Counted from the first letter of the stretch, positions 33,954 to 56,939 are shown. The stretch: 64,000 nucleotides of DNA from Perna viridis (GCA_037379345.1 CM074523.1:9599507-9663506), one strand, 5' to 3'. The notes: generated by a model not told the origin, from the sequence alone. Translations and numbers: made by a program.

Positions 33954-34088
33954 TCATCGAACATGCTTGAGCAGAAAATCGTATGTTCTTCCTTCGTATG
34001 TAGAAATGTCACTGTACAGTGTAGTTCTAACATTTTTTTTTAAATACGGAGAATAAATATGTTGTATTCGGGTCTTTTTAAACGATGC
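33954..34088 (-). CDS. Gene A exon 24: cytoplasmic tail
   Basis: ttttaag|GCA; ASFKKTRIQHIYSPYLKKNVRTTLYSDISTYEGRTYDFLLKHVR*; homologous to B 4261-4422. Confidence 0.75.
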   Translation of the reverse strand, partial: ASFKKTRIQHIYSPYLKKNVRTTLYSDISTYEGRTYDFLLKHVR

Positions 34089-54200: not shown

Positions 54201-56939
54201 TCGTTTCGTTCTAAATGCAAGTTGACAGGACTTCCTTCGATTTGGAATGCCAAATCAAGTGTTCTTGGTTCCGTGTACGTGTCTTTGATGGACCGCTTTG
54301 AACGGTTGGTGGGTTTTATTTCTACCACTATTTCTGCTGCTTAAAAAAGGAAATTAAAAAATTTAAACGAAATGACGTTTTATACAGATTGCAAAATAAG
54401 CGAATATTTTTGTCACTGCTGAACAGACCTCATCATACTGTCACTAGATATAGGTCAAGGAGATCAGACATTAATGTTTATGCTATATCTAAAGAGACGG
54501 CATGATTGTTCAAGACGAATGACTGGGACAAATCAAATTATTTTTAGATAAACCTCACTTAAATCAGAAGTTAAAACAGCCCAAAACATTGATACTGGGC
54601 ATTTGCTGTGTTTAATTGTACGGTATTTTACTGTCTCAATCATAGTTTGAGACGTGACACATGAACTCATCCGCAAAAATACAATAAAATCTGTAGGAAG
54701 AAAAAAATATCATATCTTTTTCATTTGTGTTTGAAAATCAGTCAGAGGGTAGAACAATATCACATATTTTCTATTTGTGTTTGAAAATTTGACAGAAGTA
54801 GAATAAAATATCAAATCTTACCCATTTGTGTTTGATGAGGCTATTGAATATGTTATTTAGTTTGGTTACCCAATGAATTTTTTCATTCTTTCAGAATTAA
54901 ACTATATGAACAATGTGCTAATCAACATGAAACATACGATTTCAAGGTACATGTACTAAGCATATGATAAATGAATGCATGTACACAAAAAGGTTGCGTA
55001 CCGGTATGAAAAAAAGATCAACGTACATATCATGTATATTGCACGACAGTACTTGCATCATGACCTTGTTGATAAACGGACCGAATGGATCTGATATACA
55101 TAGCAACATACTGGATACCATGTGAGGAAAGAATCATAATCATAGTGCTTCTCGACTTCGACGGGCTTCCTAACAAAATGTGATGTACGTGTTCCTAATC
55201 TTATCCACATAGTTGGTTAAATAGTTCCTCCAAAGAAAAAAGTCGGTAATGGAACGTTCCGAGACAACTGCAGCAAGTGTGCACATAGAAATTATCGATT
55301 GTTCTATTACATTCTCGGCAGATGCCCCCATTGTTATAAAGAATCTCGGTGACGAGCTCCATAATGAAATACCAATGTCTGGTATGAATCTGCCAGTGAT
55401 TGATTTTCTTATATAGTTTGGTAACACAGCAAACCTGATATGCACATGGCCTTGACGTATATTAGTGTCAATCCAGAATCAGAAAACGAAAATGCATTCA
55501 GAAAAAAACACCAAGCTAATTATTGTAATTTGAGAGACAAATATGTACAATTTTGAATTAGACTAATAGCGAGTTTTACTAGCAAAACAGGCAGAGACTG
55601 CCCTTTTGTTTTGCTGGGTCCCCATTGATCATTTAACATATGCCTTTCTGTGTTTGTCGTTGTTGTTGACGTCTTAAATTATTCATTTTTCATTCACTAA
55701 TATACTTTCAACCTGTCTATGTATTTATTAATTGATTACATTTGCAGTAATTGAATGTCTGCTGTTTGGAAGAAAAGAGTATTATTTTCAACAACTTCCA
55801 ACCTACTCTTATATTTCCGCTACATCGGATCTTTCTCTCGAGGAAATGAAATCTAGACTGTTCCTACAACATGAATTTAGAATATTGGGACAAACTAGCA
55901 TTGAGAAATGGAAGACATTTCATCCATGTTCTGACGTTCAGAACCTTCCATGCAACCGTTTTGTTCATTAATAGTTACTGGTAATTTATAGCATTTTAGA
56001 AAGTTAGACACAACGGCAATAATATAAAACCACACCGCAACATTATCACTGAAGGAGCAATCGATCAGATAAGCAGGATCCTGGATAAACATTTAGTGCA
56101 TGGCATCAAACATAACTGTGTAACTGGAAAGACACTATTAGTAGACAAATAACATGAGGTGGGCAGTTATTTTCACCTGTCTTGTGATAAGTGCGGTGTA
56201 CATTTTTAATGAGCTATTTTTATTGTGTTTATTTCAAGCTCTGGGGAAATGCATTAATAGTCTTTCTCCGGGTAAGCTCTACCGATCAGACCATCGGTAT
56301 TCCCATGTTAGATTGCAAAACATGTCAATCGTTTCAATAGATTCGCGAGAGCTTTTATTCTTGCTTCATAATTCATTACAGTTTTAATATTTATTCCAAT
56401 ATTTACCATTTTCGAATACAGAAATGTCGACGAAGTAGGGTTCAGAACTCTCATTTCAGTATTCGTTTCCCTTCTAACATACATTTAAATGTTCAAATTA
56501 AGATGAAAAAAATAAGGAATGTTTGTGATCTAAATCAACATGAGTTAAATGACTCATTCTGCCATGTATTCCTATTTTCTCTTTTCCAGCGTTCAATTTA
56601 AAGTTCTATAATTTAGGTCGCTGAAAGATGAAACAATCCTCATTTTAAAAAAATATATTTATTTTTGTTAAAGAAAATCACGAATCAGGAAAACGGGTTA
56701 ACAGGTTTTTGAAGATTTGTATTGTTTTATTGTCGACTTTAGAAGTGAATATGGTAAAAAGAAACTACCAACAGTCAAGTATGTAGAATCTGATACAGCT
56801 TAACGACAAAAAAAATCATATCAGTTACAATCTAAGGTCATAAAATATTACCTGAAGGTGAATAAACCAAATCGTCAGAAATTCTTAACCATGCCGAAGT
56901 CAACGTCATCCATGATAAAATTATAATAGTTTTATCCAT
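33954..56939 (-). CDS. Gene A: membrane-anchored MIG-17/ADAMTS-like (M12B reprolysin) metalloprotease, 24 coding exons, 1197 aa
   Basis: All exons below have GT-AG boundaries and mutually consistent phases, summing to 3594 nt with no internal stop; SP - pro - M12B - 3x(Cys-rich + PLAC-like) - mucin - TM - Tyr-motif tail. Confidence 0.88.
34213..34322 (-). CDS. Gene A exon 23: transmembrane helix
   Basis: GNMILIPIFAVVGGMVVLVVVTITACIACRRKQLKSE; donor position conserved in B. Confidence 0.85.
34950..35180 (-). CDS. Gene A exon 22: second mucin-like exon (symmetric phase 1-1, may be optional)
   Basis: ttttcag|AA GCA ACA...TCC TTA G|gtgag, 231 nt open; paralogous to the 3' part of exon 21. Confidence 0.55.
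35782..36546 (-). CDS. Gene A exon 21: PLAC-like module 3 + mucin stalk
   Basis: DCLYGDYVEPVYTNGETCSIAYRNNPNVCNYHPERCCKTC, then about 210 aa Thr/Ser-rich; 765 nt. Confidence 0.88.
37377..37577 (-). mobile_element. Penelope-like family 3' end fragment
   Basis: Same terminal sequence as about 29237-29435, reverse orientation. Confidence 0.85.
37851..38092. mobile_element. MITE with internal cacgtgaa/cacatgaa repeats
   Basis: TIR tacagaggcagatatttttcac / gtgaaataattttgcctatgta; related remnants at about 14790-14846 and 45132-45260. Confidence 0.7.
38387..38438 (-). CDS. Gene A exon 20
   Basis: WCIAGVCKSDIDAPVAD, 52 nt; B copy 9595-9646. Confidence 0.88.
39140..39259 (-). CDS. Gene A exon 19: Cys-rich module 3
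   Basis: GIYKGNYSSICAHLWCSNPSNPENCVSIQANDRTLCDTKK, 120 nt. Confidence 0.9.
40590..40795 (-). CDS. Gene A exon 18: PLAC-like 2 + start of Cys-rich 3
   Basis: NCLYGDNIGKVFSNGWTCQQMYKTAPQDCQYAERECCKTCKPHSALRNITDPDQLCKGIVGKSSFLCR, 206 nt. Confidence 0.9.
41149..41200 (-). CDS. Gene A exon 17
   Basis: VCVSSACKSDINAPTAD, 52 nt. Confidence 0.85.
41553..41672 (-). CDS. Gene A exon 16: Cys-rich module 2
   Basis: DRYNGNYTSICDSLWCKDPTRNSHCIDYIAGDGTLCGDKK, 120 nt. Confidence 0.9.
42002..42593 (+). mobile_element. Two adjacent Penelope-like 3' fragments (about 42002-42208 and 42404-42593)
   Basis: Both match the 3' UTR at 29165-29435; separated by about 195 bp of unrelated sequence. Confidence 0.8.
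42633..42838 (-). CDS. Gene A exon 15: PLAC-like 1 + start of Cys-rich 2
   Basis: KCLYGNKIGGVFRNGWTCKQMYKAAPRNCHLVEHECCKTCQPLFALNGISNPDEFCKRLLGNSSYFCR, 206 nt. Confidence 0.9.
43266..43317 (-). CDS. Gene A exon 14
   Basis: MCLAGVCKINERAKPGN, 52 nt. Confidence 0.85.
44411..44530 (-). CDS. Gene A exon 13: Cys-rich module 1
   Basis: DRYHGNFTSICNGMMCADPNNRTYCFNHIPGDGTQCGDKK (DGTxCG motif), 120 nt. Confidence 0.9.
44552..44955 (-). mobile_element. SINE-like element copy 2 (3'-truncated), inverted relative to 50117-50626
   Basis: Near-identical reverse complement of 50117-50518. Confidence 0.88.
45808..45952 (-). CDS. Gene A exon 12: end of catalytic domain, start of ADAMTS disintegrin-like/Cys-rich module
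   Basis: KEANCLREQGPKYDPTALTPFNNQFPGEMYDADEQCRHIHGRRSFFCR (PG..YDADEQC signature). Confidence 0.92.
46576..46740 (-). CDS. Gene A exon 11: third Zn ligand and Met-turn
   Basis: LSAEHDGKGNVCDGEDGFVMAAVSSIHKGVTATNPWKFSSCSTNYFTTKLDSLD. Confidence 0.93.
46955..47060 (-). CDS. Gene A exon 10: HExxH
   Basis: [36 protein letters not shown]. Confidence 0.93.
48292..48329 (-). CDS. Gene A exon 9
   Basis: YDLTRNGSSNNI, 38 nt; B copy 17347-17385 is 39 nt. Confidence 0.85.
49041..49195 (-). CDS. Gene A exon 8
   Basis: TETDSTWTEGIKNTTKERVSIDSDNSLERFREWIKQKPEPLPEMDHSMLFT (L..F..W and DH.ML.T reprolysin motifs). Confidence 0.9.
49375..49452 (-). CDS. Gene A exon 7
   Basis: MDAAYKNIQTSAYTISVVFGGLIVAK, 78 nt. 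Confidence 0.88.
50117..50626 (+). mobile_element. SINE-like element copy 1 (apparently full length, structured head, Deu-like core)
   Basis: 9-bp TSD taaaaagtg at 50108-50116 and 50627-50635; (caaa)n tail after ggacgttaaac; core gcacgttaaagaaccc..ttcgataggagtagg resembles the Deu-SINE domain (from memory). Confidence 0.85.
51276..51369 (-). CDS. Gene A exon 6
   Basis: WYDLSRKSSDAEKVEDAYKSIRQYYAFVING, 94 nt. Confidence 0.88.
51701..51818 (-). CDS. Gene A exon 5: furin site and start of catalytic domain
   Basis: TINDTNTSTEHVSDHRQKR/AAGSYNVELLIVSDYSVYQ. Confidence 0.9.
52461..52605 (-). CDS. Gene A exon 4: prodomain
   Basis: IGRFKGQFNWYTIQSKDTDSATLDPGYHKFDIRTEKIVLIANDADFID; B copy 20921-21065. 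Confidence 0.88.
52737..52953 (+). mobile_element. Diverged Penelope-like 3' end fragment
   Basis: gtatttctagaacagcagatgatgcttac...cacctggtccatg...cccttgattactcttt. Confidence 0.75.
53011..53088 (-). CDS. Gene A exon 3: prodomain
   Basis: VTTFYQDKNTGSSFAVQRIDDTNINM, 78 nt, phase 0-0. Confidence 0.78.
54125..54339 (-). CDS. Gene A exon 2: M12B propeptide
   Basis: AEIVVEIKPTNRSKRSIKDTYTEPRTLDLAFQIEGSPVNLHLERNDGVNTNLPVTVFENGNLRKRSLQDEE (RxKR and L.L.L.RN motifs). Confidence 0.88.
56852..56939 (-). CDS. Gene A exon 1: signal peptide
   Basis: MDKTIIILSWMTLTSAWLRISDDLVYSPS|gtaat; B copy 25074-25161 starts with TTG. Confidence 0.82.

Follow-up and report, generated by a model that had tools for sequence, protein, structure and literature searches.

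A predicted membrane-anchored ADAMTS-type metalloprotease with a mucin-like stalk in Perna viridis and its bivalve relatives

Among described proteases of the ADAMTS type, Caenorhabditis elegans MIG-17 is a secreted protein with one ancillary unit that contains a PLAC domain, and ADAMTS7 and ADAMTS12 contain a mucin-like region. Passages of two reviews describe ADAMTS enzymes as secreted (PMC4448532, PMC4133867). Our literature search returned no natural membrane-anchored ADAMTS, and the sole hit of that kind was an engineered membrane-bound ADAMTS13. Here we analyze a gene (gene A) on the minus strand of a 64,000-nucleotide stretch of the Perna viridis genome (GCA_037379345.1 CM074523.1:9599507-9663506; this whole stretch is the window, and coordinates refer to it unless stated otherwise). 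In gene A, a catalytic domain and disintegrin-like domains of ADAMTS type precede a Ser/Thr-rich stalk and an exon for a transmembrane (TM) helix, and RNA joins the last part of this series on one transcript. We consider it probable that the product is a furin-activated ADAMTS-type endopeptidase, carried on a long O-glycosylated stalk with a single TM helix and a minimal tail, that is, a type I membrane glycoprotein.

Gene A comprises 23 exons (E1–E23) between 56939 and 34204, with 3468 nt corresponding to 1155 codons plus a stop. All introns are GT-AG and all phases are consistent in the rebuilt model, for which length and phase were obtained by exon arithmetic. The model was assembled from splice-site candidates and RNA joints, with small exons placed by eye and by reference to homologues; domain and homology searches were run exon by exon. 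The window is AT-rich (G+C content ~31%), and stop-free segments within 33.9–57 kb already reveal the parts that an earlier note on this DNA, made from the sequence alone, had listed. The order of domains is a signal-like N-terminus, propeptide, M12B catalytic domain, three repeats of ADAMTS_CR_2 plus a six-Cys module, Ser/Thr stalk, and TM helix. The features of the gene are as follows.

56852..56939, minus strand: E1, ATG at 56939 and signal-peptide-like N-terminus (MDKTIIILSWMTLTSAW...); signal peptide judged by eye; the paralogue exon 25075-25155 is 70% identical.
54125..54339, minus strand: E2, propeptide with a first dibasic site, RSKR; Pep_M12B_propep E 6e-4 (below cut-off); tblastn to Mytilus homologues.
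53011..53088, minus strand: E3, propeptide (TTFYQD...); resembles the 'IFYQD' stretch of homologues, by eye.
52461..52605, minus strand: E4, propeptide; an exon of the paralogue gene B is 72% identical.
51701..51818, minus strand: E5, end of propeptide, furin-type RQKR, and start of catalytic domain; sequence and tblastn to homologues.
51276..51369, minus strand: E6, catalytic domain; tblastn to homologues and model.
49375..49452, minus strand: E7, catalytic domain; homologues and model.
49041..49195, minus strand: E8, catalytic domain; homologues and model.
48292..48329, minus strand: E9, catalytic domain, a 38-nt exon; resembles 'RYDLTRDGS' of homologue P0006, by eye.
46955..47060, minus strand: E10, catalytic domain, HELGH (two zinc His and catalytic Glu); Reprolysin_3 E 1.4e-4.
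46576..46740, minus strand: E11, third zinc His and Asp (SAEHD), Met-turn FVMAAV, end of catalytic domain; sequence and homologues.
45808..45952, minus strand: E12, disintegrin-like domain 1 (ADAMTS_CR_2), first half; PF17771 E 1.1e-5.
44411..44530, minus strand: E13, ADAMTS_CR_2 no. 1, second half; PF17771 E 4.3e-6.
43266..43317, minus strand: E14, end of Cys-rich unit 1 (MCLAGVC...); homologues and model.
42633..42838, minus strand: E15, six-Cys module 1 and start of ADAMTS_CR_2 no. 2; no Pfam family matched.
41553..41672, minus strand: E16, ADAMTS_CR_2 no. 2; PF17771 E 4e-8, above cut-off.
41149..41200, minus strand: E17, end of Cys-rich unit 2; homologues and model.
40590..40795, minus strand: E18, six-Cys module 2 and start of ADAMTS_CR_2 no. 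3; 3′ end joined to E19 in RNA.
39140..39259, minus strand: E19, ADAMTS_CR_2 no. 3; PF17771 E 2.9e-5; RNA joint to E20.
38387..38438, minus strand: E20, end of Cys-rich unit 3 (WCIAGVC...); RNA joints on both sides.
35782..36546, minus strand: E21, six-Cys module 3, then a 214-residue Cys-free stalk segment, 43% Ser/Thr; in both RNA contigs.
34950..35180, minus strand: E22, second stalk exon, 76 residues, 39% Ser/Thr; RNA joints on both sides.
34204..34322, minus strand: E23, TM helix (ILIPIFAVVGGMVVLVVVTITACIAC), 11-residue basic tail RRKQLKSEVKL, stop at 34204-34206; RNA contigs; weak TM_ErbB1 match (E 1.2e-5).
34171..34203, minus strand: 3′ untranslated region of at least 33 nt; RNA contigs.
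33957..34088, minus strand: candidate Tyr-motif tail exon of the earlier note, outside the transcripts seen; zero RNA depth.

RNA was mapped on the 3′ part of the gene only, as spliced contigs from two studies and two stranded raw RNA-seq runs. The contigs (depth 200 and 137) join 39140|38438, 38387|36546, 35782|35180, and 34950|34322 and then extend to 34171; every stretch skipped is bounded by CT..AC as read on the plus strand and hence by GT..AG on the strand of the gene. The E18–E19 joint (40590|39259) is seen in a loose contig end (run X4) at 39260 that equals window 40591-40620. Stranded raw reads cover the exons thinly and in a single orientation, and two of them (run X22) span E22|E23. 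One abundant spliced mRNA (E18–E23) carries Cys-rich unit 3 together with the stalk and TM exons, and exons 1–17 are predicted solely from homology. Transcripts that end before the TM exon had been set beforehand by the earlier note as its refutation; the contigs instead run through that exon, which is part of this gene from E18 onward. The same RNA bears on the 24-exon, phase-consistent model proposed there. Its in-phase exons and the joints E20|E21, E21|E22, and E22|E23 stand, with two corrections: an optional exon within 35208-35405, a duplicated and now intronic piece of E21, is skipped (joint 35782|35180), and the joint to the tail exon is unused, leaving 23 exons.

The catalytic domain, of the reprolysin/adamalysin type (MEROPS M12B), has an intact active site. 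Its zinc-binding sequence, HELGH|SLSAEHD, is split across E10 and E11 and reads HELGH-x5-HD, with FVMAAV as the Met-turn; all active-site residues are present. The Reprolysin_3 match on E10 alone is at the cut-off, and full-length homologues match PF01421 at 1e-10 to 1e-17. The propeptide model PF01562 scores below its curated cut-off on E2 alone, and RQKR directly precedes the catalytic domain. Four homologues (P0006, P0007, P0013, and P0014; P numbers denote database relatives) have R-x-K/R-R at the same place as the RSKR of E2. Because the propeptide has no Cys, there is no cysteine switch. The E2 acceptor is a triple NAGNAG (AAG|CAG|CAG; 54339/54336/54333, window 54333-54339), and another choice there would lengthen or shorten the propeptide, close to its N-terminal end, by one or two residues.

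The solved structures closest to homologue P0007 are ADAMTS-5, -1, -13, and -4, which align across the catalytic and disintegrin-like domains (E ~1e-16), whereas ADAM and snake-venom structures score lower and align to the catalytic domain only. E11 alone, used as a query to solved structures, gave no match. As in ADAMTS sensu stricto, PF17771 follows the catalytic domain, here in three copies (E 4e-8 to 3e-5 per exon). Because of the structure matches of P0007 together with PF17771, the enzyme core is assigned by sequence to the ADAMTS side. Neither TSP_1 nor the spacer matched in any exon (Pfam) or in 18 full-length homologues scanned; the gene has no WxxW, and a motif scan found it missing in nearly all homologues. 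Disintegrin (PF00200), ADAM_CR, and EGF gave no Pfam match in the exons or the scanned homologues. Two defining ADAMTS features are absent: there is no TSP1 repeat, and, with a TM exon in the same spliced transcript, a predicted membrane anchor stands in place of secretion.

Behind the three ancillary units is one set of three exons (206/120/52 nt) whose phases are the same in every copy and which recurs in phase from E12 to E20. In each unit, an ADAMTS disintegrin-like domain is paired with a six-Cys module, C-x15-C-x10-C-x6-CC-x2-C. The PLAC model (PF08686) gave no match at E up to 10 on the three six-Cys modules, nor any in the exons, and none in the 18 homologues scanned (E up to 0.01 or up to 1); the same model picks up seven PLACs elsewhere in this genome. 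When 61 six-Cys modules were compared with those seven PLACs by hhalign, the probability was 38%, and only the last 17 columns (C...CC-x2-C) aligned. With the Pfam model blind to the module and the hhalign result weak, we dropped the PLAC label that had been given to it. A distant kinship with PLAC may exist, and judged by sequence, the module is PLAC-like in cysteine pattern only. AlphaFold2 modeling of six-Cys module 1 and its linker from an 11-row alignment was of low confidence (mean predicted local distance difference test score 62, predicted template modeling score 0.44), and a search of the ESM Atlas with residues 530-590 of P0007 returned no usable match. Sequence comparison places the module as one conserved in molluscs (and nemerteans) that lacks a Pfam model; adjoining ADAMTS_CR_2 as it does, it deserves one of its own.

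The stalk is encoded by E21 and E22 as 214 + 76 residues (~290 in all), is Cys-free, and is 42% Ser/Thr overall; by alignment, E22 duplicates the last 76 residues of E21. A further copy of the middle of E21 lies in the intron at 35181-35405 (minus strand), still in-frame-looking (…TMSSKALITKIFSRY versus …TMSSKSLITYLFTRY). The E22 acceptor sits within the duplicated block, as in a segmental duplication of a stalk exon that was exonized only in part. In E23, a hydrophobic stretch of ~25 residues leads into the basic tail and the stop codon. Pfam detected no SEA domain in E21–E23, so that the gene lacks the membrane-adjacent SEA of transmembrane mucins, which is present in paralogues P0006, P0019-21, and P0025. 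Two features of E23 invite speculation: the ...EVKL C-terminus (34204-34240) fits a hydrophobic-x-hydrophobic, class II PDZ-ligand-like pattern, and two Cys at the inner membrane border (CIAC) could be acylated. Much of the architecture in the earlier note is upheld by these data: a propeptide ending in RQKR, an M12B domain with three zinc His, Glu, and Met-turn (Pfam matches and intact residues), three Cys-rich plus six-Cys units (PF17771 three times), no TSP1 or WxxW, and a stalk that it put at ~210-290 residues followed by a TM helix. Its central proposal, an ADAMTS/MIG-17-type reprolysin without TSP1 joined to a stalk and TM helix, agrees with the Pfam matches and with the E18–E23 transcript.

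Relatives of the gene were found throughout bivalves. E15 (68 residues), searched against 1.84 billion representatives, returned 17 proteins only, the named ones being from Mytilus, and full-length searches from two of the 17 led to about 120 relatives. At least ~45 of these have M12B, ADAMTS_CR_2, the six-Cys module, often a Ser/Thr-rich region, and a C-terminal TM segment, where TM and motif calls in relatives come from a simple hydrophobicity and motif scan (window heuristic). The family pattern tested was propeptide, M12B, ADAMTS_CR_2, C-x(10-20)-C-x(7-13)-C-x(4-10)-CC-x2-C, Ser/Thr-rich region, and C-terminal TM; gene A shows every element of this pattern of an unnamed bivalve family of TM-anchored ADAMTS-like proteins. 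The TM-bearing relatives are as follows.

Mytilus (five or more species): P0001, P0006, P0007, P0019-22, P0027, P0031, P0032, P0036-42.
Scallops (Pecten, Mizuhopecten, Argopecten, Ylistrum): P0043, P0054-56.
Oysters (Crassostrea/Magallana, Ostrea, Saccostrea): P0059, P0060, P0066, P0072, P0073, P0075, P0076, P0081, P0083, P0087, P0090.
Clams (Mercenaria, Mactra): P0071, P0080.

The same domain order is found in Crassostrea gigas XP_011422649.1 ('serine-rich adhesin for platelets isoform X2', P0076), Mytilus californianus XP_052080095.1 (P0006), and Mytilus coruscus CAC5368028.1 (P0007). Closest in form are C. gigas P0076 and P0083, with a mucin-like stalk, a TM segment, and ~12 residues after it by the window heuristic. 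The bivalve proteins differ from gene A in sequence (40-55% identity in aligned exons) and in that most have one ancillary unit rather than three, with three also in P0001 and P0030 and four in P0027. A SEA domain is added in some of them, and in many the tail has 60-140 residues, compared with 11 here. Relatives from gastropods, chitons, and nemerteans also carry the six-Cys module, frequently as multiple copies, but show no TM segment by the heuristic. E21 as a query found no database homologue at E up to 1e-5, a result whose meaning is limited by the length filter and the low-complexity stalk. By sequence, gene A appears as one member of a large bivalve-wide family, arranged here in a tandem cluster. 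The single lineage-specific invention suggested by the earlier note gives way to a domain order and C-terminal TM segment shared by Mytilus, scallops, oysters, and clams. Its remark that it knew of no described family holds for the literature, where we found no description; the proteins themselves have public database entries that carry automatic names ('hypothetical', 'Peptidase M12B domain-containing', 'ADAMTS-3/6/7/10/14/16-like', 'ADAM family mig-17', snake-venom-style names, 'serine-rich adhesin for platelets', and 'mucin-5AC').

We propose the following course for the product of gene A. The signal peptide would direct the protein into the secretory pathway, where a furin-like convertase would cut the propeptide off at RQKR, possibly after a first cleavage at the conserved RSKR. 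Removal of the propeptide would activate the HELGH-x5-HD/Met-turn site. The three tandem units of disintegrin-like domain and six-Cys module, products of the triplicated exon trio, may serve as substrate-binding exosites. An O-glycosylated, extended stalk would hold the enzyme far above the membrane, to which the TM helix and the basic tail would anchor it. Such a protein would reside at the cell surface as a pericellular protease that cuts matrix or mucus, a design like that of a membrane-type matrix metalloproteinase (MMP) made from ADAMTS parts.

Several points weigh against this proposal. Prediction is the basis for the signal peptide, TM helix, O-glycosylation, furin cleavage, and catalytic activity alike. 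The link of the protease to the stalk and TM helix draws on RNA from E18 on, on colinear homologues, and on a stretch with no stop or start signal between. The named Mytilus proteins share only 40-55% identity with the product of gene A, and there is no close database protein. The contigs stop at 34171, which may not be the 3′ end of the mRNA; a hole in contig depth proves little, and a rare long-tail isoform may exist.

The C-terminus is the part of the protein for which the readings differ most. In a long-tail version, ...KQLKSE would be spliced to 34088-33957 to give a ~50-residue tail with tyrosines at the spacing of immunoreceptor tyrosine-based activation or switch motifs (ITAM/ITSM), making the protein a signaling receptor; the earlier note had proposed this tail and suggested that the protein may also signal. 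In its favor, KQLKSE is followed by a GTGAAG donor that is in phase with a pyrimidine-rich acceptor at 34088, and many paralogues of other bivalves have tails of 60-140 residues with tyrosines. However, the dominant spliced contigs of the two studies run from 34320 to 34171, unspliced through the donor and the stop codon at 34204-34206, and depth is zero over 33894-34087 in all four RNA runs (two contig sets, at 137-200 on exons, and two raw runs). The TM exon of the tandem paralogue (4544-4660, minus strand) keeps the same EVKL-stop ending and the AATAAG motif that lies just 3′ of the stop in gene A, and no paralogue tail matched the candidate exon by tblastn. The expressed tail is most likely the 11 basic residues RRKQLKSEVKL, counted after the membrane-flanking Cys. 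Because the motif exon lies outside the transcripts and the expressed tail is Tyr-free, the expressed protein has no cytoplasmic YxxL/I-x(6-8)-YxxL/I and gives no ITAM-like reading. We regard the long tail as improbable, and the suggested signaling falls with it, the dominant mRNA stopping 11 residues past the membrane-flanking Cys. A somewhat less remote alternative, though still unlikely, is that the anchor is transient and the ectodomain is released, through its own action or that of another protease, to act mainly as a soluble enzyme in mucus or matrix like secreted ADAMTS; this would be compatible with the membrane-anchored form that we prefer. The membrane-adjacent SEA of P0006, P0019-21, and P0025 is a module typical of cleaved or shed transmembrane mucins, and the related gastropod and chiton proteins lack a TM segment by the heuristic. 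Against this, gene A has no SEA match and no sequence mark of a shedding site, and its conserved TM helix and basic tail argue for a retained anchor.

Two further explanations concern the unity and the activity of the predicted protein. The model could join two genes by mistake, one for a secreted protease like MIG-17 and, downstream of it, one for a membrane mucin, given that RNA support starts at E18, that exons 1–17 come from homology, and that tandem paralogues and many repeats in the window can mislead a model. Yet the RNA is continuous from E18, the exon for six-Cys module 2 and the first part of disintegrin-like domain 3, as far as the TM exon; the exon trio repeats seamlessly, in phase, across E12 to E20; and dozens of annotated homologues have the same continuous order, which leaves such a fusion very improbable. 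We give equally little credence to a noncatalytic adhesion or scaffold protein (pseudoprotease). Decay does occur in the cluster, where the neighboring paralogue has lost the third zinc His (SAEYD) and has a frameshift, whereas in gene A the three His, Glu, Asp, and Met-turn are intact and the frame is open across 23 exons.

Gene A lies among paralogues. This 723-Mb genome has at least 25 copies of the E15-type exon, and a cluster of multi-unit paralogues at C13:9.53-9.64 Mb includes the window, with at least five such paralogues on both strands within ~110 kb (G000:C13:9534623-9643000). Further copies are at C13:12.5, 15.1, and 28.0 Mb and at C10:3.586-3.593 Mb. Within the window, gene B (4544-25155, minus strand) is a tandem paralogue with colinear exons 57-90% identical to those of gene A. 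In gene B, Tyr takes the place of the third zinc His (SAEYD), the E11 equivalent (15195-15360) needs a frameshift, and no third six-Cys module was found before the stalk exon (5346-5990); from its sequence, gene B is likely a decaying copy or a pseudoprotease. On the plus strand, 678-800 holds another TM exon (PIIAGVGGGLLFLIISVITCCCCC...), 44% identical to E23, with the frame open beyond the TM segment into a longer tail. It is probably part of a plus-strand paralogue that has its last six-Cys exon ~1.3 kb before the start of the window (G000:C13:9598103-9598246).

Sequences resembling mobile elements lie between and around these genes and in an intron of gene A. A BEL/Pao-type long terminal repeat (LTR) retrotransposon (58647-64000, minus strand) lies directly upstream of gene A and contains a Pao peptidase A17 open reading frame (ORF; E 2e-34), an integrase zinc-finger ORF, and gag-like ORFs, at a G+C content of ~40% compared with 31% around it. 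Between the two paralogues, 29843-31828 (minus strand) holds non-LTR reverse transcriptase fragments (RVT_1, E 6e-7) and an endonuclease-like ORF. A ~200-bp repeat in the E20–E21 intron (37377-37577) reaches an RNA depth of 1e5 in contigs and 400-600 in raw reads, in both orientations and with numerous variant letters and loose ends. In appearance, it is a very abundant element of the short interspersed nuclear element type, transcribed from many loci, and similar pieces occur in stop-free frames at 42365-42600, 44550-44865, and 50200-50450.

Taken as a family, these proteins are widespread in bivalves, already deposited under automatic names, and seemingly without a description in print. In Mytilus galloprovincialis RNA-seq (PMC4581086), the genes most enriched in hemocytes include an 'ADAMTS16' transcript, a lead only; it may be a candidate relative of this bivalve family. 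ADAMTS is not mentioned in the eLife mussel gill atlas. On balance, and with reserve, we incline to the broader view that bivalves hold an undescribed clade of type I membrane-anchored ADAMTS-like proteases ('MT-ADAMTS') with an un-modeled six-Cys module, mucin (sometimes SEA) stalks, and tandem clusters, maybe tied to hemocytes or mucosal surfaces, which would be an independent third instance of metzincin tethering beside ADAMs and membrane-type MMPs. If true, the catalytic and disintegrin-like core of ADAMTS would have become a cell-surface enzyme in bivalves, in parallel to both of those groups. Such an assignment would correct database names, in that 'serine-rich adhesin for platelets', 'mucin-5AC', and snake-venom-style labels sit on proteases, and would offer a handle on the remodeling of pericellular matrix and mucus in molluscs.

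Compared with known systems, the predicted protein resembles C. elegans MIG-17 in its propeptide, M12B domain, ADAMTS-type disintegrin-like domain, small six-Cys module ending CC-x2-C, and lack of TSP1, and two scallop relatives are automatically named 'ADAM family mig-17'. It differs from MIG-17 in having three units, a six-Cys module unseen by the PLAC model, and a mucin stalk and TM helix in addition. With vertebrate ADAMTS it shares the catalytic and disintegrin-like domains and furin-type activation, but it is without TSP1, spacer, and PLAC, and its mRNA includes a TM exon. The likeness to ADAMs lies in a type I membrane reprolysin with a propeptide and a cytoplasmic tail; here, the ancillary domain is of ADAMTS type, and a mucin stalk is found in place of the ADAM Cys-rich and EGF domains. 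Membrane-type MMPs such as MT1-MMP (MMP14) would be similar in overall design, as furin-activated zinc endopeptidases with a stalk, one TM helix, and a short tail that act near the cell surface, whereas the protein encoded by gene A is an M12B rather than an M10 metzincin, has no hemopexin domain, and carries a stalk that is much longer and mucin-like.

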